This document shows, in pieces, positions 2,582 through 42,863 of a DNA stretch of 64,000 bases. Position 1 is the first letter of the stretch; every line of letters starts with the position of its first letter. The position numbers were made by a program, and so were the translations under genes. The stretch is taken from the IMG/VR virus record IMGVR_UViG_3300020172_001601, positions 124,001 to 188,000 of that record, one strand, 5' to 3'. The notes beneath the pieces were generated by a model. That model was given only the letters and a program-made list of their open reading frames with translations, was not told the origin of the DNA and searched no databases.

Positions 2582-3196
2582 ATGTCATTAGCACAGAGAA
2601 AAGTCTTAGTTTTGAACAAGTCGTGGACTGCCATTGGCGTCGTCACGTTGGAAAAGGCACTCAAGAAAGTCGCCGGAACCTACAAAGACGGTACACCGAA
2701 GGCACGCATCATCGACGCACTTCATGACTTTGCTATGCTGACCTGGGATGATTGGGCAAAACTCCGTCCAGCGGAAAACGAGCCAGCAATGCGTTCTGTG
2801 AACGCAGTGTTCCGTATTCCTGAAGTTATCCAGTACACTCGATACGACAAGCTGCCTTCACAGAAGGTCCACTACAACCGTAGGACTATCTACCGGCGTG
2901 ATGGTAACATCTGCCAGTATTGTGGAAAGCAGAAGCCGGGCAGTGAGTTGTCATTGGACCACGTTATCCCACGTTGCCAGGGTGGTTTGACCACCTGGGA
3001 AAACATTGTCGTGGCTTGCACTGACTGCAACGCACGGAAGGCTGGTCGTACTCCGAAGGAAGCCAATATGAAGTTGCTCTCTGTGCCTAAGAAGCCAAAG
3101 CACAACTTCTTCCCTGGTGATGTTCGGGTGAAGTCTTGGGAGCAATTCCTTGGCGAAGCGTACTGGCTCACAGAGCTAGAACATGACGGTGACTAG
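2582..3196 (+). CDS. HNH endonuclease (McrA-like)
   Basis: VLVLN N-terminus; RDGNICQYCG..SLDHVIPRCQGGLTTWENIVVACTDCNARK. Confidence 0.9.
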   Translation: MSLAQRKVLVLNKSWTAIGVVTLEKALKKVAGTYKDGTPKARIIDALHDFAMLTWDDWAKLRPAENEPAMRSVNAVFRIPEVIQYTRYDKLPSQKVHYNRRTIYRRDGNICQYCGKQKPGSELSLDHVIPRCQGGLTTWENIVVACTDCNARKAGRTPKEANMKLLSVPKKPKHNFFPGDVRVKSWEQFLGEAYWLTELEHDGD

Positions 3197-3219
3197 CTGT
3201 CTACGGATTGCTAAACAAT

Positions 3220-3258
3220 AGCCTCTGGCGTGTGGCGACATGCGCCAGAGGCTTTTTT
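3220..3258 (+). terminator. intrinsic terminator
   Basis: agcctctggcg/cgccagaggct stem followed by T run. Confidence 0.75.
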
Positions 3259-3275
3259 ATTCTTCATGGTGCGAT

Positions 3276-3680
3276 ATGGAAAAGTTATCACCCGCAGTTC
3301 AAAAACTCATTGCTATCCGCACCAAGTTGGAAGACGAGCGGCATCAATTTGCCCTGAAGCATGGCTTTGCATACAAGCGGGCGCAGGACTTCAAAAGCTG
3401 CGTAGTCATCCGTTGGAAAACATCTCGGAAGAAATACGAAATCAATTATCCTCGTCTCGATGAGTATGGCAAAATAACCCATGAACTCTCGGAAAAGTAC
3501 GACCTGTACGTTGAGGAATATCCACTGCTTAGTGCGGACCTTCGATTGTTGAAGGCAGGCATTTACGTTTTCTCATCATGGGATTATCAGGCATGGGCCA
3601 TCCCAAATGAAAACAAGGAAATTCAGGACTATGTTCTGAGCAAGTTACCTAAATGGGTCAAAGTGAGTGTGAAGAAATGA
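3276..3680 (+). CDS. hypothetical protein
   Basis: ORF coupled by ATGA overlap to the next gene; start uncertain. Confidence 0.65.
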   Translation: MEKLSPAVQKLIAIRTKLEDERHQFALKHGFAYKRAQDFKSCVVIRWKTSRKKYEINYPRLDEYGKITHELSEKYDLYVEEYPLLSADLRLLKAGIYVFSSWDYQAWAIPNENKEIQDYVLSKLPKWVKVSVKK

Positions 3681-4963
3681 TTCGCCCTATTCCGCTATCT
3701 CATGGCGTTGGGTTTTTCTCAATGCAGCAATTGCCTCAATTTGCAGGCAAGTACCGTGAGGAAAATGTCGGTCGCTATTGGAACTACTATGTCACTCCAG
3801 AGTGCCAGGAATGGCCCGAAGCTGTGACGTATAAGGGTCCGTATGTAATCGACGGGTTCTCCCCAAACCTCAACAAGAGTCTGCACGTCGGGCATCTACG
3901 TCAATTGGCCTTGGCCAAGTCTTTGGAGAGCATTATGAACTTTGCTCAACCTAAGCCTAATGCCAAGTTCGTTTCCCTATTGGGAGCTTCACAAGGCGTT
4001 TTTCAATACGCTACTGAGCAACTGAATGGATGGTTCGATTTCTTGAACTTCCATCCAGAGTTGCACTATGACGTATTGATGCCACGAGATCAGGAGATCG
4101 TTCCTCGTTACAAAACCAAGGTGCCGGTCAAAGACCCTATTTCGACTGACATTAACGGCAAGCCTTTCGAGCATGAAGAAGAATGTGAAGTATGGGATGG
4201 TCCCAATGGGCCTGTAATCGTCGTTCGTTGGGATGGGCGTCCTTTGTATGCCTTCCAAGACATTGCCTTCTCGAAGGTCGTGGGGCCGACGCATTACATC
4301 ACTGGCACTGAGCAACAGGAGCATTTTGCAAACCTGGGGCTGGGTGACAAACACTTGCCTATGGGCCTTGTATTGGGCGCTGACGGCAAGAAGATGAAGT
4401 CTCGTACTGGCGATAGTGTCACGGCGAAGGAAGTGCTGGATCAGATTGTATCGCAGCTTGATCCGACACCTGAGCCGAACAAGCTGGCGTGGAACGTCTT
4501 GGCGTGGAACTTCCTTCACGTCGCTCGTTCCAAGAGCGTGAAATATACACCGCAAGAATGGACGAAGCCGGATGCTCCGGGCATGTATATTTCCTACACT
4601 TATGCCCGTCTGCAATCGGCATTGGAATGGAACGAAAAAGAAGACCACCGAGTTGGGTCGCTCCGTTGGCTTTGGAACATGGAAGGGTTGGGACTCGACA
4701 AAGGCGAGTTGACTCAATCCGATTCTGAATTGCTTGGTCTGGCAAATCAACATGCTTACGCATTGCAGCGTAGCATTGATTCTCTCGACCCGGCGATTTT
4801 GGCAAATTACGCTTATGATCTGGCTTCCAAGCTGGGTACGGCGTATCATGGGGAAAAGATCAAGGGTGGTCGCCCAGGGTTCAAGTATGCCCTGATTTGT
4901 GCTACGCTTCACCTTCGTTTGTGTATGCACCAACTCGGCATGTTTCCTTTGGAGAATATTTGA
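3677..4963 (+). CDS. argS: arginyl-tRNA synthetase-like protein (N-terminally reduced)
   Basis: class I HIGH (SPNLNKSLHVGHLR) and KMSKS (GKKMKSRTG) motifs; DALR-type YISYTYARLQS..PAILANYAYDLA..LGMFPLENI. Confidence 0.8.
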   Translation: MIRPIPLSHGVGFFSMQQLPQFAGKYREENVGRYWNYYVTPECQEWPEAVTYKGPYVIDGFSPNLNKSLHVGHLRQLALAKSLESIMNFAQPKPNAKFVSLLGASQGVFQYATEQLNGWFDFLNFHPELHYDVLMPRDQEIVPRYKTKVPVKDPISTDINGKPFEHEEECEVWDGPNGPVIVVRWDGRPLYAFQDIAFSKVVGPTHYITGTEQQEHFANLGLGDKHLPMGLVLGADGKKMKSRTGDSVTAKEVLDQIVSQLDPTPEPNKLAWNVLAWNFLHVARSKSVKYTPQEWTKPDAPGMYISYTYARLQSALEWNEKEDHRVGSLRWLWNMEGLGLDKGELTQSDSELLGLANQHAYALQRSIDSLDPAILANYAYDLASKLGTAYHGEKIKGGRPGFKYALICATLHLRLCMHQLGMFPLENI

Positions 4964-5295
4964 TGGATGCTCAACAACGAGAAGCCGATCAGCGAGCTAT
5001 TGCTTCTGAAAGGAAGATGACAGACGCCGAGTTTCTTGAAACAATGTCAAGAACGGACTCGTTGATTGACCATGAACCTGATTCCACTTGTGGCATGTGT
5101 CATCACCAATTCGTGATGGCACAGGTCGCTCGTGATATGATTGCAGCGGGTGAGACGGAAGACGTAATCAAGAAGTGGTCCGATGAGGCCGAACGTCGCT
5201 GGCGATCATCTAAATTTGTTCAACTTTGGGATGAAGCTGTTGCTGCCGATAAAGACCCTAGTACGGTCTTTGAGGAACGTGGTTGGGAGCCTTAA
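4963..5295 (+). CDS. hypothetical protein
   Basis: TGATG overlap with the previous gene. Confidence 0.7.
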   Translation: MDAQQREADQRAIASERKMTDAEFLETMSRTDSLIDHEPDSTCGMCHHQFVMAQVARDMIAAGETEDVIKKWSDEAERRWRSSKFVQLWDEAVAADKDPSTVFEERGWEP

Positions 5296-5847
5296 ATGTC
5301 AGAACATGGAATCGTCAAAGACGGTCAGTGGGTGCCTTTGCCTCCAATCATGACTATTGAATCCCTGTTGGCTTATGGCTTCAAGGAATGGCCAGTCAGT
5401 CAACATGACAAGCATGATCGGCACTGGCAGTTCTGCAAGCGTGACGAAAAGGGCAAGAAGCTCTATGTTCAGGTGCGACTATGGGCCTTCAGCAAATATA
5501 GCAATTCAGAACGAATGGTAACAGATTCATTTGATGCCGAAGTTCAATTCGACATGAATGGCCCTAAGACATTCAATGTCAATATCAGCGTCAACAATAT
5601 GACTCCAGCACAGGTTGTTGAATGGTTCGAGAGGATGCACGATATAATGGGATGCACTCACTATGAAGTGTATGCCGATGACCAATACAACGAAGAGGGC
5701 GAGAAGACTCACTACGACTGTGATAAATGTGGAAGATATTTGCCACCAGAAGAAGCTGTCGCACCGTTTCTTTGCCCTGGTTGTAAGTACGAAACAGAGA
5801 GTGGTTTTAAGCAAGTTACCAGAAAGGTCAAAGTAAAGCGTAGATAG
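5296..5847 (+). CDS. hypothetical protein with C-terminal zinc ribbon
   Basis: CDKC...CPGC. Confidence 0.7.
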   Translation: MSEHGIVKDGQWVPLPPIMTIESLLAYGFKEWPVSQHDKHDRHWQFCKRDEKGKKLYVQVRLWAFSKYSNSERMVTDSFDAEVQFDMNGPKTFNVNISVNNMTPAQVVEWFERMHDIMGCTHYEVYADDQYNEEGEKTHYDCDKCGRYLPPEEAVAPFLCPGCKYETESGFKQVTRKVKVKRR

Positions 5848-5848
5848 C

Positions 5849-5877
5849 TTTACAATTTGGACCTCTCGTGGTAGAAT
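5849..5877 (+). promoter_or_regulatory. sigma70-type promoter upstream of the release factor gene
   Basis: TTTACA-17 bp-TAGAAT preceded by TGG. Confidence 0.75.
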
Positions 5878-5913
5878 GTAGAAGTCCAGCAAACTTTTTT
5901 GGAGATTACTGCA

Positions 5914-6721
5914 ATGAGCAAGAACAACCAGTGGCACAGTCAGGAGCGTAAGGGCGATTCATCGGCGATGGTCTGTCTTTAACTCCGCTAAAACTCTTAT
6001 CCTCGAACTGCATGGCGGGGAAGGTGGCGAAGACTCGAAGTTATTCGTCGCCGATTTACTTGAAACCTATCTCAAATACGCTTCCAACTGTGGATTAGGC
6101 TATGAAGTCCTGACAAAAGAACACGGTCACGCAATTGCCAAGATCACAGGCAAAGGCGTCTGGAAAGCGTTTCAAAACGAACCCGGCAAACACGTTGTAC
6201 AGCGTGTCCCACCCACAGAGCGTGGTGGGCGACGGCAAACCTCTATTGTGACGGTTGCTGTAATGCCGCTGCCTCCTGAGAACACTCAGGAGCCGCTTCG
6301 TGAAAAAGACCTGGACATTATCTTCCAGACGGGCAAGCAGAAGGCAGGCGGTCAAAACGTCAATAAAGTGGCGTCAGCCGTCCGCATGAAGCATAAGCCG
6401 ACTGGAATGATGGTCTTCATCAACGGTAGAGATCAGAAGCAAAATCTCGATGAGGCGTTGCGCATATTGACTTTCAAGGTCAATGAGCAAAAGCGGCTCA
6501 AGATCGAGGGCGAATACGATCAATCCCGTAAGACGCAAATGATGAGCGGCGGTGATCGAATTGGTGGTAGAGGCGATAAAATTCGCACCTACAACTTCAT
6601 TCAGTCTCGTGTCGTGGATCACAGGCTTGGTCGCAAAACGGCCAACATTAAAGAGGTCATGAAGGGCAATTTCTCCATCCTGTTCAATGATGGAGAAATG
6701 TCTGGCAGTGACGACGAATAA
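5914..6721 (+). CDS. prfA: class I peptide chain release factor, RF1-like, expressed through a +1 programmed frameshift (about 268 aa)
   Basis: GGAG SD, ATG 5914, 22 codons, then CTT TAA C; the +1 frame gives LILELHGGEGGEDSKLF..KHVVQRVPPTE..TSIVTVAVMP..AGGQNVNK..KIRTYNF..RVVDHR and has no ATG/GTG/TTG of its own before 6248. Confidence 0.85.
5977..5983 (+). other. prfB-like +1 frameshift site CTT-TAA-C
   Basis: same slippery codon and position as prfB CTT-TGA-C, but the stop is UAA. Confidence 0.8.
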
Positions 6722-6741
6722 CTCGATTTTGCTTAATCGAG

Positions 6742-6776
6742 GGCCAGCATCTTCTTTGGGGGTGCTGGCCTTTTTT
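6742..6776 (+). terminator. intrinsic terminator
   Basis: ggccagcatc/ggtgctggcc stem followed by T6. Confidence 0.75.
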
Positions 6777-6822
6777 ATTCGCTCGTACTCCTTTGATATA
6801 TCCAGCTTCAAAGGAGCATATT

Positions 6823-7140
6823 ATGTGGCTTGAATTAGGCAAAGAACGACCGGGCGGTGTCCCACAGAACAATCCACGAATTTGGGTCAATACAGACCAT
6901 ATCGTGCGTGTAGAATTCATTCAGGAAGGTGCGGTATTGACCGCTACAGTCATCTCTACGAAGCCGGGCGGTTCAGATCGCACGATATTCAAAGGTGATG
7001 ACGCAGAACGATTAAGACTGACTTTGAACATGGAACGCTCTCGTCCTGGTTGGCAACCATTGCTCGACTATGAGATGCCAGCGGAACCAGACCTCTTCCA
7101 AAAGGCTGTCCAAAAGGCTGATAAAAAACCAAAGAAATAA
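6823..7140 (+). CDS. hypothetical protein
   Basis: AAGGAG SD. Confidence 0.7.
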   Translation: MWLELGKERPGGVPQNNPRIWVNTDHIVRVEFIQEGAVLTATVISTKPGGSDRTIFKGDDAERLRLTLNMERSRPGWQPLLDYEMPAEPDLFQKAVQKADKKPKK

Positions 7141-7185
7141 GCGAACCCGTTTTGCTTATTTCCTGTCAAGTGAACGGAGGGAAAA

Positions 7186-8112
7186 ATGGCAAACGTAATT
7201 AAAGAACTGTACGACAAGAGATTGACCAATCTCGGCGGTCATCGCTGGATTCCAGACAACATGCACTACATCACCATGATGGGTAGTGTGGCCTATGGTG
7301 TTTCAAACGACACGTCTGACACGGACATTTATTCCTTTTGTATTCCACCAAAGGAAGAATTGTTCCCGCATCTTCGTGGCGAAATCGTAGGCTTTGGTGA
7401 TGCCGTACACGCCAACAATAGATTCACCAATTACCAAGAACACCACATCAAAGATGTCGGTGCCGAGAAAGAATACGACCTCAACATTTACAACATTGTT
7501 GACTTCTTTCAGTTGGTGATGGAAAACAACCCTAACATGATCGACTCTCTGTTTACGCCCCAATGGTGCGTATTGCACAGCACTAGAGTCGGCCAGATGG
7601 TTCGAGAGCAGAGAAAGATATTTCTTCACCTGGGATCGTGGCACACTTTTAAGGGCTATGCTTATTCACAGCTAAAGAAGTGTGGGTCAAAGAAGCGAAC
7701 CGGGAAGCGAAAGCAAGTGGTAGACGAAATGGGCTTCGACCCGAAATTCGCTTACCATATTGTGAGAAATCTGAATGAAATCGAACAGATTCTCACAGAG
7801 GGCGATCTGGACCTACAGCGAAATAGAGAACAATTGAAGGCTATTCGCCGTGGAGAATGGTCGCTCGAACAGATAGAAGAATATTTTGAGCGGAAGGAAC
7901 TTGAGCTAGAAACTCTGTATAATGAGAATAAAGCCGGTTTACCTTGGGGGCCTAAACACGATGGTTTGCAAGAGAAAGTTAAGCAACTTCTCTTTCAGTG
8001 CCTCGAAGAACACTATGGATCGCTTGACAAATGTATTGTCAATCCAGATGCCGCAGTGATGGCTCTCCGGGAGGTTGGCGACGTTCTCGCAAAATACAGA
8101 AACCTTCTATGA
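7186..8112 (+). CDS. DNA polymerase beta superfamily nucleotidyltransferase (RlaP/Nuc-transf-like)
   Basis: GSVAYG..SDTDIY motif; NNPNMIDSLF; FKGYAYSQ; KFAYHIVR. Confidence 0.8.
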   Translation: MANVIKELYDKRLTNLGGHRWIPDNMHYITMMGSVAYGVSNDTSDTDIYSFCIPPKEELFPHLRGEIVGFGDAVHANNRFTNYQEHHIKDVGAEKEYDLNIYNIVDFFQLVMENNPNMIDSLFTPQWCVLHSTRVGQMVREQRKIFLHLGSWHTFKGYAYSQLKKCGSKKRTGKRKQVVDEMGFDPKFAYHIVRNLNEIEQILTEGDLDLQRNREQLKAIRRGEWSLEQIEEYFERKELELETLYNENKAGLPWGPKHDGLQEKVKQLLFQCLEEHYGSLDKCIVNPDAAVMALREVGDVLAKYRNLL

Positions 8113-8747
8113 AATTCATTCCGACAGATGTTGAACACTGCACGGTTGTCATGATGGATCGCTATTATGACAACCGTGGTTTTTTTCAGGAACTCTACGA
8201 ACAAGACAAATACACGCATGGCATCGAGTTATTGAATTGGCAACAAACCAATTGGTCCGTAAGCAATAAGAATGTATTGCGAGGAATCCATGTTGCTAAT
8301 TATGCCAAGCTAGTCACATGCGTCTCAGGGAAAGTATGGGACTTGGTAGTTGATCTTAGAACAAACTCGCCAACTTTCTTAAAGCACGTCGGAGTTGAAC
8401 TGACTCCTGATGAACCCAAACAAATCTATGTGCCGCCAGGATGTGGACACGGCTTTGTGTCGCTTGAAGACAACTCTTCTGTTGTTTATATGCAAACTGG
8501 TCGTTTTGCCAAAGAAGGTGAATTGACAGTTATGTATAACGAACCCAATCTCAACATTCAATGGCCCGGCGAAAACCACACCATATCAGAACGTGATAAA
8601 GGTGGTCAGCCACTATGGTCATTTCAGATGTGTTTATCTGAAGAAATAGACTACAAACTGAATGATGAACTTCAATCTGTATGGGTCGCCTCTCTTCCTC
8701 CAGAAAGCCAGGAAGAGTGGAACAAAAAGTATCCTAAGTTAGAATGA
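8109..8747 (+). CDS. rmlC: dTDP-4-dehydrorhamnose 3,5-epimerase
   Basis: DNRGFFQE, QTNWSVS..VLRGIH, KLVTCVSG..DLVVDLRTNSPTF, YVPPGCGHGF. Confidence 0.9.
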   Translation: MKFIPTDVEHCTVVMMDRYYDNRGFFQELYEQDKYTHGIELLNWQQTNWSVSNKNVLRGIHVANYAKLVTCVSGKVWDLVVDLRTNSPTFLKHVGVELTPDEPKQIYVPPGCGHGFVSLEDNSSVVYMQTGRFAKEGELTVMYNEPNLNIQWPGENHTISERDKGGQPLWSFQMCLSEEIDYKLNDELQSVWVASLPPESQEEWNKKYPKLE

Positions 8748-9654
8748 AGTCAACGAATTGAATTTCCAATACATCTCTTGGAAATTGTGTTCCTGCCGCT
8801 AGAGCTTTATTTTCGCTTACTTTCCATTGTTCTTTGATTCGTCTTAGGACAGCAGGTTCGTGAGTGAAGAATAGCTCTACTGGATGTGTGACCAATTCTT
8901 CTTCAGATATGTTCAATCCCGCTTCTTCGATTATCTTTTTATATTCCTTCATGGGATCGAGGAAGTTTCTGGTGCGGGTTTCTTTTAGCCCCATGCTGAA
9001 CAATTCATCTGTACTGAACACCAAATGCAGATAAGCTCTATTTAGTTGTTTATAAAGATGCGTACCGTGGCGACTGGTCCAAGGGTGGCATCGTAAATAA
9101 ATGCGACCATTTGGAGCTTTGACCTCGTTTGCCTTGATGAGTATATTTTCATCTGCGTGGTCGATTACATCATTGACCAGTATGACATCGTATGGACCAT
9201 TCTTTTTGATTTCGTCAAAATCAGTGCTGAATCGCAGGTTGACGGTATCTTCAAAGTGACTCCAGTTTTGCTCGATGGGATCATAGCCCATAGACAATTT
9301 GACGCCTACGAGATTGGCAGCAACATAGGGAACATGCCCTTCGCCGCAGCCGAAGTCCAGTAGTTTTTTATCGCTTAGATCGGTGCGAATAAAGTCATGT
9401 ACGATTCCTGCTGCACGAGACAGCTTGTGATCCTCGTCTTCGCCACAAATCAGGTCTTCAGGCACCGCCAGAGGCCATTTCTCGGACTTGGCGAGCAATC
9501 GGAGGGTTGTGATCTCCGATAGCCTTTCACGCTCGCCAACGGGCATTGGGGGCGTTTTGAGTTCTTCTTCGAGTAACGAACGCATGAAGCCTGTCATGTG
9601 TTCAAGCGCCCGGAGGTATTCTTTGATTGTTTTTTGGTCCATGTTTCTTTCCAC
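8734..9654 (-). CDS. class I SAM-dependent methyltransferase
   Basis: LLDFGCGEGH motif I; YDVILVNDVIDH. Confidence 0.8.
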   Translation of the reverse strand: MERNMDQKTIKEYLRALEHMTGFMRSLLEEELKTPPMPVGERERLSEITTLRLLAKSEKWPLAVPEDLICGEDEDHKLSRAAGIVHDFIRTDLSDKKLLDFGCGEGHVPYVAANLVGVKLSMGYDPIEQNWSHFEDTVNLRFSTDFDEIKKNGPYDVILVNDVIDHADENILIKANEVKAPNGRIYLRCHPWTSRHGTHLYKQLNRAYLHLVFSTDELFSMGLKETRTRNFLDPMKEYKKIIEEAGLNISEEELVTHPVELFFTHEPAVLRRIKEQWKVSENKALAAGTQFPRDVLEIQFVDFILT

Positions 9655-41383: not shown

Positions 41384-41423
41384 CTGCCCGGTCATCGTGG
41401 GGATGACCGGGCAGTTGTTGTTT
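41384..41423 (+). terminator. intrinsic terminator
   Basis: ctgcccggtcatc/gatgaccgggcag stem. Confidence 0.7.
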
Positions 41424-41456
41424 ACAGAACTCGTTTTTTGGGGTAGAATCCTCATC

Positions 41457-42863
41457 ATGTTCACTTTATCGGAAGCATACGAAGCATTAAATGGTCACGA
41501 CGAGTTTGCCGTAAAGGTTTACGACGGCAAGGTTTCGTTCGACTACATCGTTATCTTTCCTGGGTCTTTCGACGCTACCGATGATGAAATCCGACACCGT
41601 GCTTATCTCCTGTGGGAGCAAGCTGGTGGTCCGGTCGTGGACTCTGCACAATTCTGGTTTCAGGCAGAGCGAGACATTAAGCGTTTTGCTCATCTTCGTC
41701 GCAATTTTCGTGGCGTTACGTTTGACGTAGCGACCGGCGAAATGATCTCGCTGCCTCTTCACAAGTTTTTCAACGTCAACCAAATTCCAGAAACTCAATA
41801 TGATGTTATCAAGCATCATGATGCTGTTATCTATGAGAAGATGGATGGGACGATGATTCACTTCTTCCTACACAATGGGAAGTTAGAAGCTGCAACCTGC
41901 CGTTCGACTCATCACCCGCTCGCACATGAGGCGTTGGCGTTGGCGAAGAAGAACCGTATTGATGGGATGATTGTTGATACCATCAAGAACGGTTGGACTC
42001 CAATCTTTGAATATGTTGCTCCACACAATCAAGTTGTGGTTCAATATGCCGAGCCACGTTTGGTGCATCTGGTATCCCGTGAACGCAAGTCAGGAAAGTA
42101 TCATTACGATGATTCTTTTCCTGATAAGGCACGTCGTTTTGAATTCAAGTTTGGTCAGGTTTTCAATAACCTCGATCATACTGAGTTCGAGGGATATGTT
42201 TGTCATTTACCAAACATGGTCGTCAAGGCAAAGACTCCTTGGTACATGGAACGTCACCGGGCTGTTGATGCTTTGATGCGCCCGGCGTACAAGTTATACA
42301 AAATCGTATTCGATGGGTTGATGGACGACTTGATCGCCATCGCCACCGAGCCGTACAAGCCAGCGCTTCGTAAGGTATACGAAGAGGCTCAACGTGATCT
42401 TCTGAACGAGAAGAAGCGTGTAGAGGAACAATTTGCTGAGGCTGTGGAACTTTCCGAGAAGGCTCCGACTCTAACGGACGATCCAAATCCGTTGGCTGAT
42501 TTAGAGAAGGAAATCAATCTCCTGAAGGACCAGGGCAAGCGATTGGAGGCCATCAAGCGGGTTCGTGACTTCACGGGCCTTGGCTTGAGTGAAGCAAAGT
42601 CTTACGTTGAACGTGGTGTGTGGCCCCACGGTTTTATTCGACGTGATGAACAAGAGATTGAGGCTCGTCGGCTTATTCGCACCAAGGGCAGCTTCGCTGA
42701 TCTGGCTCGTGCAAAATATCCTGATGACTTCAACCTCATCATGGCTTTGTATCAAGGGCGTGATCCTAGCGATGGGATCAAAGAGCGGTTGATGGAGGTA
42801 TATCGTGTGAAATACCCTCAAAAACTTTACGCCAAACTTGATGATAACCATGAAGATGGGTAA
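41457..42863 (+). CDS. T4 Rnl1-like RNA ligase with DUF2934-like and L7/L12-CTD-like insertions
   Basis: RGVTFD..LPLHKFFN, YEKMDGTMI, TPIFEY, EGYV, KAKTPWY; EIRHRAYLLWEQAG..FWFQAERDI; LEAIKRVRDFTGLGLSEAKSYVE. Confidence 0.85.
   Translation: MFTLSEAYEALNGHDEFAVKVYDGKVSFDYIVIFPGSFDATDDEIRHRAYLLWEQAGGPVVDSAQFWFQAERDIKRFAHLRRNFRGVTFDVATGEMISLPLHKFFNVNQIPETQYDVIKHHDAVIYEKMDGTMIHFFLHNGKLEAATCRSTHHPLAHEALALAKKNRIDGMIVDTIKNGWTPIFEYVAPHNQVVVQYAEPRLVHLVSRERKSGKYHYDDSFPDKARRFEFKFGQVFNNLDHTEFEGYVCHLPNMVVKAKTPWYMERHRAVDALMRPAYKLYKIVFDGLMDDLIAIATEPYKPALRKVYEEAQRDLLNEKKRVEEQFAEAVELSEKAPTLTDDPNPLADLEKEINLLKDQGKRLEAIKRVRDFTGLGLSEAKSYVERGVWPHGFIRRDEQEIEARRLIRTKGSFADLARAKYPDDFNLIMALYQGRDPSDGIKERLMEVYRVKYPQKLYAKLDDNHEDG

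Follow-up and report, generated by a model that had tools for sequence, protein, structure and literature searches.

A shortened RF1-type release factor gene of a huge phage with a probable prfB-like +1 frameshift site at a UAA codon

Background

Can the gene of an RF1-type release factor be controlled by a programmed +1 ribosomal frameshift, as the gene of RF2 is? Programmed frameshifting in release-factor genes has been the textbook property of RF2: in the bacterial prfB gene a short leader ends in the consensus CTT TGA C with an upstream Shine-Dalgarno (SD) element, and the ribosome either terminates at the in-frame stop or shifts forward into the frame of the release factor (PMC3711429, PMC12421855). 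A 2025 survey of more than 12,000 bacterial genomes found no programmed frameshift in prfA, the gene of RF1, and found the prfB stop to be TGA in 98.6% of cases, otherwise TAA, and never TAG in 8,164 genomes (PMC12421855). The question was raised by a gene in a 64,000-nucleotide stretch of DNA from a huge phage (IMG/VR record IMGVR_UViG_3300020172_001601, positions 124,001 to 188,000), here called the window.

A preliminary description of the gene, made from the sequence alone, had proposed that a 22-codon leader ends in CTT TAA C, that the +1 frame encodes an RF1-type factor lacking most of domain 1, like PrfH or rescue factors, and that the arrangement is an autoregulatory frameshift of the prfB kind with only a weak internal SD-like element. 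We find that what it reported of the sequence is correct throughout, while its interpretation is supported only in part: the RF1-type product, the missing domain 1 and the need for a prfB-style shift all find support, whereas the autoregulation is not shown and the likeness to PrfH or rescue factors is only architectural.

The gene and its predicted product

The locus is laid out as a one-gene transcription unit, and its features are collected in the table below. The leader, of 22 sense codons (MSKNNQWHSQERKGDSSAMVCL), has the only SD + ATG at the locus, and the +1 frame is open from just after a TGA that overlaps this ATG. The +1 frame has no ATG, GTG or TTG before GTG 6248, which a mechanical ORF listing reports as the start. 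From AAC 5981 it reads NSAKTLILELHGGEGG... through the recognition loop, GGQ and KIRTYNF..DHR to its stop. The stretch upstream of CTT (GATGGTCTGT) is indeed only weakly SD-like, and the SD element that prfB-type sites have three nucleotides upstream of CUU is absent here, where the sequence is TGGTC TGT CTT. The 10-mer TGTCTTTRRC alone is not beyond chance, since it occurs once in the window against 0.59 expected; its significance comes from its frame, its position and its conservation in homologues.

Features of the window around the release-factor gene and of related elements elsewhere in it
Positions	Strand	Feature	Evidence or remarks
2582-4963		HNH endonuclease ORF, 146-aa ORF and ArgRS-like ORF (catalytic fragment plus DALR domain)	Upstream of the release factor
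5849-5877	+	Sigma-70-like promoter, TTTACA-17 nt-TAGAAT with extended -10 TG	Nearly identical in the nearest relative, L003, although the leader has diverged
5901-5904	+	Shine-Dalgarno GGAG, 9 nt before the leader ATG	Conserved in L003; leader ORFs of homologues have SD + ATG in the same arrangement
5914-5982	+	Leader ORF (frame 0), 22 codons plus TAA	Sequence not conserved in L003, but length (22 versus 21 codons) and ending Cys-Leu-stop are
5974-5983	+	Shift site TGT CTT TAA C (CTT 5977-5979, TAA 5980-5982, C 5983)	P-site CUU, A-site UAA, then C; L003 has TGT CTT TAG C
5981-6721	+	Body of the release factor in the +1 frame, 246 aa plus stop (TAA 6719-6721), domains 2-4 only	Pfam, NCBIfam, PDB and predicted fold (see text)
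6200-6220	+	Codon-recognition loop QRVPPTE (RF1-type Gln plus PxT)	RF1 outgroups QRVPATE and QRVPSTE; RF2 outgroups VRKSPFD and VRISPFD
6347-6355	+	GGQ peptidyl-tRNA hydrolysis motif	Invariant in the family alignment
6739-6779	+	Strong intrinsic terminator: 16-bp stem (6739-6773) followed by a T run	With the promoter it makes the gene a one-gene transcription unit
7186-8112		RlaP-family nucleotidyltransferase (RNA-repair associated)	Two genes downstream of the release factor
41397-42863		Rnl1-like RNA ligase	
58011-58084		tRNA gene, anticodon CUA (amber-reading)	First of two
58098-58700		200-aa ORF with a Gly/Cys/His-rich tail	Weak GRDP-like hit; flanked by the two tRNA genes
58708-58778		tRNA gene, anticodon CUA (amber-reading)	Second of two
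2050, 5849, 15055, 25862, 29386, 41421, 47044, 51391, 52579, 57937, 61327, 63550	+	Promoter-like motif TTTACA N17 (G)TGGTAGAAT	12 occurrences, all on the + strand, against 0.01 expected

The product of the +1 frame is RF1-type in sequence. A Pfam search finds PCRF (84 bits, profile positions 99-194 of 194) and RF-1 (72 bits). Among NCBIfam profiles, RF1 ranks first at 210 bits, followed by RF2 at 129, PrfH (TIGR03072) at 45 and ArfB at 20, all of them below their curated cut-offs; for RF1 (prfA, TIGR00019 / NF001859) the scores are 210 and 198 bits against 400 and 423, for PrfH 45 against 167, and for ArfB 20 against 100. Against solved structures, RF1 scores 143 bits, RF2 84 and PrfH 53. An AlphaFold model, made from an alignment without one row that came from a GenBank record, has a mean pLDDT of 87.9 and superposes on ribosome-bound RF1 with a TM score of 0.82 over about 239 columns, and every top fold match is RF1. 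The match begins at position 102 of 347 of the RF1 profile, or residue 106 of Thermus thermophilus RF1, so that domain 1, of about 100 residues on the RF3/L11 side, is missing, and the 22-residue leader cannot supply it. Domain 1 is dispensable for codon recognition and hydrolysis and is needed for the interaction with RF3 (PMC1586002).

Conservation of the shift site

The preliminary description had named two outcomes that would overturn it, an indel error at 5980 and homologues that are continuous ORFs without the motif, and it had asked for an alignment of phage homologues. We therefore compared homologues. A megablast search of positions 3000-9000 against GenBank phages gave no match, but a search of 5.8 billion proteins found a large family of RF1-like proteins of 190-293 aa, many of them on contigs of 400-670 kb. 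Gene callers report these genes truncated or extended in the wrong frame; where they were extended upstream, the N-termini read ...xVF|D/E/N/S..., which is the wrong-frame reading of NNC TTT RRN. We retrieved 14 IMG/VR loci, 78 metagenome loci and 20 loci from metagenome-assembled genomes (MAGs), numbered below with the letter L, and analysed their frames by script and by eye; a full census over IMG/VR with predicted hosts was not made.

Of 81 distinct proteins whose 5′ region is available, 75 have CTT followed by a stop in the -1 frame, usually 11-13 codons and most commonly 12 codons before the GxGG motif, and upstream of it lies a short ORF with SD + ATG. Over 99 unique sites the consensus is a G-rich block at -11 to -7, a T/G/T spacer codon, CTT in 100%, the stop, and then C in 75%. 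An SD-like 4-mer at the spacing of prfB, one codon upstream of CTT, is present in 47 of the 99 sites, against 7.5% of random 10-nt windows, and a 5-mer in 30. The leaders often end in ...NRGxL, and the leader of Escherichia coli prfB ends in ...LRGYL. The nearest relative, L003, is about 98% identical to the window in the body and nearly identical in promoter and SD, and yet the leader coding sequence between them (window 5914-5976, L003 2937-2999) is strongly diverged, a local hypervariable patch, while both keep TGT CTT TA(A/G) C. The identical site is found in the IMG/VR copy, and the TAG variant occurs in a second sample. Neither of the two outcomes named beforehand was found: the homologues are not continuous ORFs, and a break shared by 75 of 81 homologues from many samples, with intact and conserved bodies, excludes an indel artefact or a pseudogene.

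Three genes have no gate and start with SD + ATG 11-15 codons before GxGG, which confirms that the short protein without domain 1 is the product. Three others (L010 around 1985-2000, L015 around 1975-1990 and L060 around 1975-1990) have leader and body in the same frame, separated by an in-frame TGA (AGT TGA C, CAG TGA A, CGT TGA A), a readthrough-type gate. The flanks of L010 and L015 give no evidence for TGA as a sense codon; the available L060 sequence was too short for that check.

Stop codons and tandem sites

Over all 102 sites the stop is TAG in 54, TGA in 41 and TAA in 7. Among single sites the counts are TAG 27, TGA 22 and TAA 1, the last being the window. Ordinary stops of 263 neighbouring genes are 41% TAA, 33% TGA and 25% TAG, so that TAA, at 7% of gate stops, is avoided at gates, which argues for selection on the gate stop. 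About a third of the genes, 26 in number, need two successive +1 shifts, each site with its own SD-like element and CTT-stop (L001 at 2370-2452, and L007, L009, L011, L017, L026-L030, L034, L035, L039-L043, L048, L051, L055, L063, L071, L073, L097, L098 and L100). Written distal + proximal, they are TAG+TGA 9, TAG+TAG 7, TAA+TGA 3, TAA+TAG 3, TGA+TGA 3 and TGA+TAG 1, and the published 595-kb phage LR756511 is one of them.

The stop changes without any change in the codon-recognition loop. Pairs of close relatives that differ in the gate stop have identical loops, for example the window (TAA) and L003 (TAG), or L019 (TAG) and L020 (TGA), which share GKHVVQRVPPTERSGRRQTS. A search for co-variation between gate stop and protein residues found none in the recognition region, and the top raw associations lie in the variable C-terminal tail or follow clades. 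The loop keeps the RF1-type Gln and PxT, with no SPF or Ser-x-Thr except in one member (L040, SPT). In prfB the stop is specific for the encoded factor; the window's UAA is readable by an RF1-type factor but also by RF2, and 41 sites of the family are TGA with an RF1-type loop, so that on this point the comparison with prfB goes neither way.

Stop-codon reassignment was considered as the cause and is rejected for the regions available. The window uses TAA 38, TGA 35 and TAG 18 times as the stop of its 91 predicted genes, and the flanks of TGA-, TAG- and tandem-type loci use all three stops and gain nothing from treating TGA or TAG as sense.

Phylogeny and distribution

In a quick maximum-likelihood tree the 81 proteins form one clade (support 100) on a long stem branch, sister to bacterial RF1, with RF2 as outgroup, although only three cellular RF1 sequences were sampled. 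The proximal stop changes at least 12 times on the tree, and the single or double state at least 15 times. The window groups with L003 (TAG), L019 (TAG), L020 (TGA) and L021 (TAG), so that its TAA is one transition from the local majority state.

Many members are in huge phages, on IMG/VR contigs of up to 573 kb and in LR756511, and in several phage loci (L014, L015, L016, L054, L085) the gene is embedded in dense tRNA arrays, with up to 21 tRNAs in 4.7 kb; one array includes tRNA-Leu(GAG), the tRNA that reads the slippery CUU. A 15-row clade, uniformly TAG, is made up mostly of Obscuribacterales (Melainabacteria) MAG loci, with one oculatellacean cyanobacterium MAG and unassigned metagenome loci, on contigs that reach 759 kb and 1.1 Mb. 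Flanks were checked for L112 and L114 (Obscuribacterales) and L105 (the cyanobacterial MAG); they carry ECF sigma/anti-sigma, MsrA, SDR and DprA genes and look chromosomal. The copies in Obscuribacterales/Melainabacteria and the cyanobacterial MAG (L102-L114, for example L112 2025-2681 and L114 2025-2672) all have a conserved leader of 17-19 codons ending in ...KSQRL or ...SGHL, and CTT TAG C 8 codons before GxGG; whether these genomes also keep a canonical prfA, and the Obscuribacterales genomes a prfC, was not examined. Copies in Pirellulaceae MAGs sit beside MetRS and RidA. More distant RF-like genes occur in other published huge phages (L121-L125: LR745206, LR756502, LR756501, LR745208, LR756504), where the RF frame is a short segment, open only from the middle of the recognition domain and without the cassette, which may reflect an alternative code or other recoding; these were not pursued.

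Genomic context

No functional neighbour is conserved across the family. In thirteen related loci (L096, at 55-1833, and 12 others) the upstream neighbour carries an intein plus HNH, and seven loci share the small ORF downstream. In the window the neighbours are an ArgRS-like gene, unknown ORFs and RlaP, with no RtcB, and RlaP together with the RNA ligase further on looks like an RNA-repair tool kit. Of the twelve promoter-like motifs, one precedes the release-factor gene and one lies directly before the first tRNA-CUA gene, which suggests a shared expression class. Since TAG ends 18 of the window's 91 predicted genes, there is no sign of TAG recoding here, and the role of two amber-reading tRNAs beside an RF1-type factor is unexplained. 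The rest of the 340-kb genome was not examined for recoding of TAG in late genes, nor was it examined what the two tRNA-CUA genes insert.

Discussion

The explanation that we favour, with good though not full confidence, is that this one-gene unit encodes an RF1-type class-I release factor without domain 1 whose synthesis depends on a prfB-style +1 shift. In this view, ribosomes start at ATG 5914 and reach CUU in the P site with UAA-C in the A site. If a release factor acts first, a 22-residue peptide is released and no factor is made; if termination is slow, the peptidyl-tRNA-Leu re-pairs from CUU to UUU, AAC is read next, and a 268-residue product (...MVCL-NSAK...) is made. Output would be inversely coupled to how fast UAA-C is terminated in the infected cell, and because UAA is read by host RF1 and RF2, and presumably by the phage factor itself, this would give both negative feedback and a read-out of termination capacity. 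The product should recognise UAA and UAG and hydrolyse peptidyl-tRNA, but without the domain that couples to RF3. What our analysis demonstrates is the anatomy of the gene, its motifs and predicted fold, and the conservation of the site; that shifting takes place, how efficient it is, whether it depends on release-factor level, and which codons the product reads are inferred, by analogy with prfB in the case of the mechanism, as neither frameshifting nor release activity on UAA, UAG or UGA was measured and there is no experimental or read-level evidence for shifting here. Against the proposal for this particular allele, its SD-like stimulator is weak, and UAA, being read by both host factors, is the least favourable stop for shifting as well as the rarest state in the family, so that it could be a low-expression or transitional variant of the TAG state seen in its nearest relatives.

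The word autoregulatory is where the family departs from the preliminary description. A Gln + PxT factor is expected from established structural work, by which such a loop restricts the second base to A, to read UAA and UAG only, so that TGA gates cannot be product feedback unless the factor is unusually broad, and product feedback cannot be the general logic. Simple autoregulation fits the TAA and TAG sites, and the uniformly TAG clade, which includes the chromosomal-looking copies, is what RF1-type autoregulation predicts. An alternative, which fits the family as a whole better but which we hold only tentatively, is that the gate is a sensor of host release-factor capacity, the auxiliary factor being made only when host termination is slow at the gate's stop codon (RF1 for UAG, RF2 for UGA, both for UAA), with tandem gates acting as coincidence or ultrasensitive detectors. 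The counts of stops and tandem genes, the close pairs with identical loops, the repeated changes of the proximal stop, the members with an in-frame TGA and the absence of any sign of reassignment in the flanks speak for it, and the mixed phage clades fit sensing of the host; however, for the window's UAA the two readings are not exclusive, and the benefit that an RF1-type factor would bring when RF2 is limiting is not clear. It is also possible, but unlikely, that the factor reads all three stops, so that any stop would give autoregulation, as proposed for the eRF1-type factor of Mimivirus; all three stops do occur with one and the same loop, but that loop is of the RF1 type and no residue co-varies with the stop.

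Two simpler readings find little room. A single window read alone could not exclude a sequencing or assembly indel or a decaying pseudogene, but the comparative data refute both. Very unlikely as well is translation without any frameshift, starting inside the +1 frame either at GTG 6248, which would give a 157-aa GGQ-domain protein of the truncated kind that gene callers annotate, or at a non-canonical codon near 5999-6010: the 89 codons between 5981 and 6248 encode the conserved recognition domain and are under clear protein-level constraint, there is no SD before 6248, and the homologues without a gate do not start at the position of 6248.

The closest precedent in mechanism is prfB, with which the family shares a short leader with its own SD + ATG, a P-site CUU, an in-frame stop followed by C, a +1 shift into the body of a class-I release factor and, in about half of the sites, the SD-like element. 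It differs in that the product is RF1-type and lacks domain 1, the site lies just before domain 2 rather than inside domain 1, the stop may be any of the three, the spacer codon is usually TGT, tandem sites occur, and the family is found in phages as well as cells. The nearest viral precedent is the class-I release factor of Mimivirus (R726) and Megavirus (mg280), whose synthesis needs a UGA-C readthrough plus a +1 shift at CUU UAG C (Mimivirus) or CUU UAA C (Megavirus), so that there, too, two gates act in series and the stop differs between close relatives; that factor is eRF1-type, reads all three stops and acts in viruses of eukaryotes, whereas here the factor is bacterial RF1-type and the tandem gates are mostly two frameshifts (PMC3521657). 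Canonical RF1 shares domains 2-4, the recognition loop and GGQ, with about 37% identity. PrfH lacks domain 1 and ArfB keeps only the GGQ domain (PMC1586002, PMC6514570), with a basic C-terminal tail; PrfH has an altered recognition region and is paired with RtcB, while here the recognition domain is present, its loop is canonical RF1-type and no RtcB gene is adjacent. In stop-codon-recoded phages, RF1 or RF2 genes lie near suppressor tRNAs and aaRS genes (Borges et al., 10.1101/2021.08.26.457843), as the window has its tRNA-CUA genes and ArgRS-like gene, but that work pairs RF1 with TGA recoding and RF2 with TAG recoding. RF1 and RF2 genes are recorded there and in the paper on huge phages, and the word frameshift occurs in neither text. 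We found no description of an RF1-type frameshift or of tandem frameshifts in phage release factors in the full texts that could be searched, which did not include subscription-only papers.

It is about as likely as not that these genes represent a previously undescribed family of domain-1-less RF1-type factors, in huge phages and in some bacteria (Obscuribacterales, an oculatellacean cyanobacterium, probably Pirellulaceae), whose synthesis is controlled by modular stop-codon gates, either one or two prfB-like +1 frameshift cassettes or an in-frame UGA. The gates would act as sensors of RF1 and/or RF2 capacity, and tandem heterologous gates (UAG then UGA) would demand that both be limiting. 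This would be the first RF1-family programmed frameshift and the first natural tandem +1 frameshift in a bacterial-type release-factor gene. The family breaks both rules drawn from bacterial genomes, that RF1 is not regulated in this way and that TAG never occurs at the prfB site, since it has RF1-type bodies and frequent TAG gates, adds tandem gates, and swaps freely among the three stops without changing the decoding loop. It provides ready-made parts for RF1- and RF2-responsive translational switches and a natural series of constructs for asking what a stop-codon gate measures, and it offers a handle on why huge phages carry their own termination factors.
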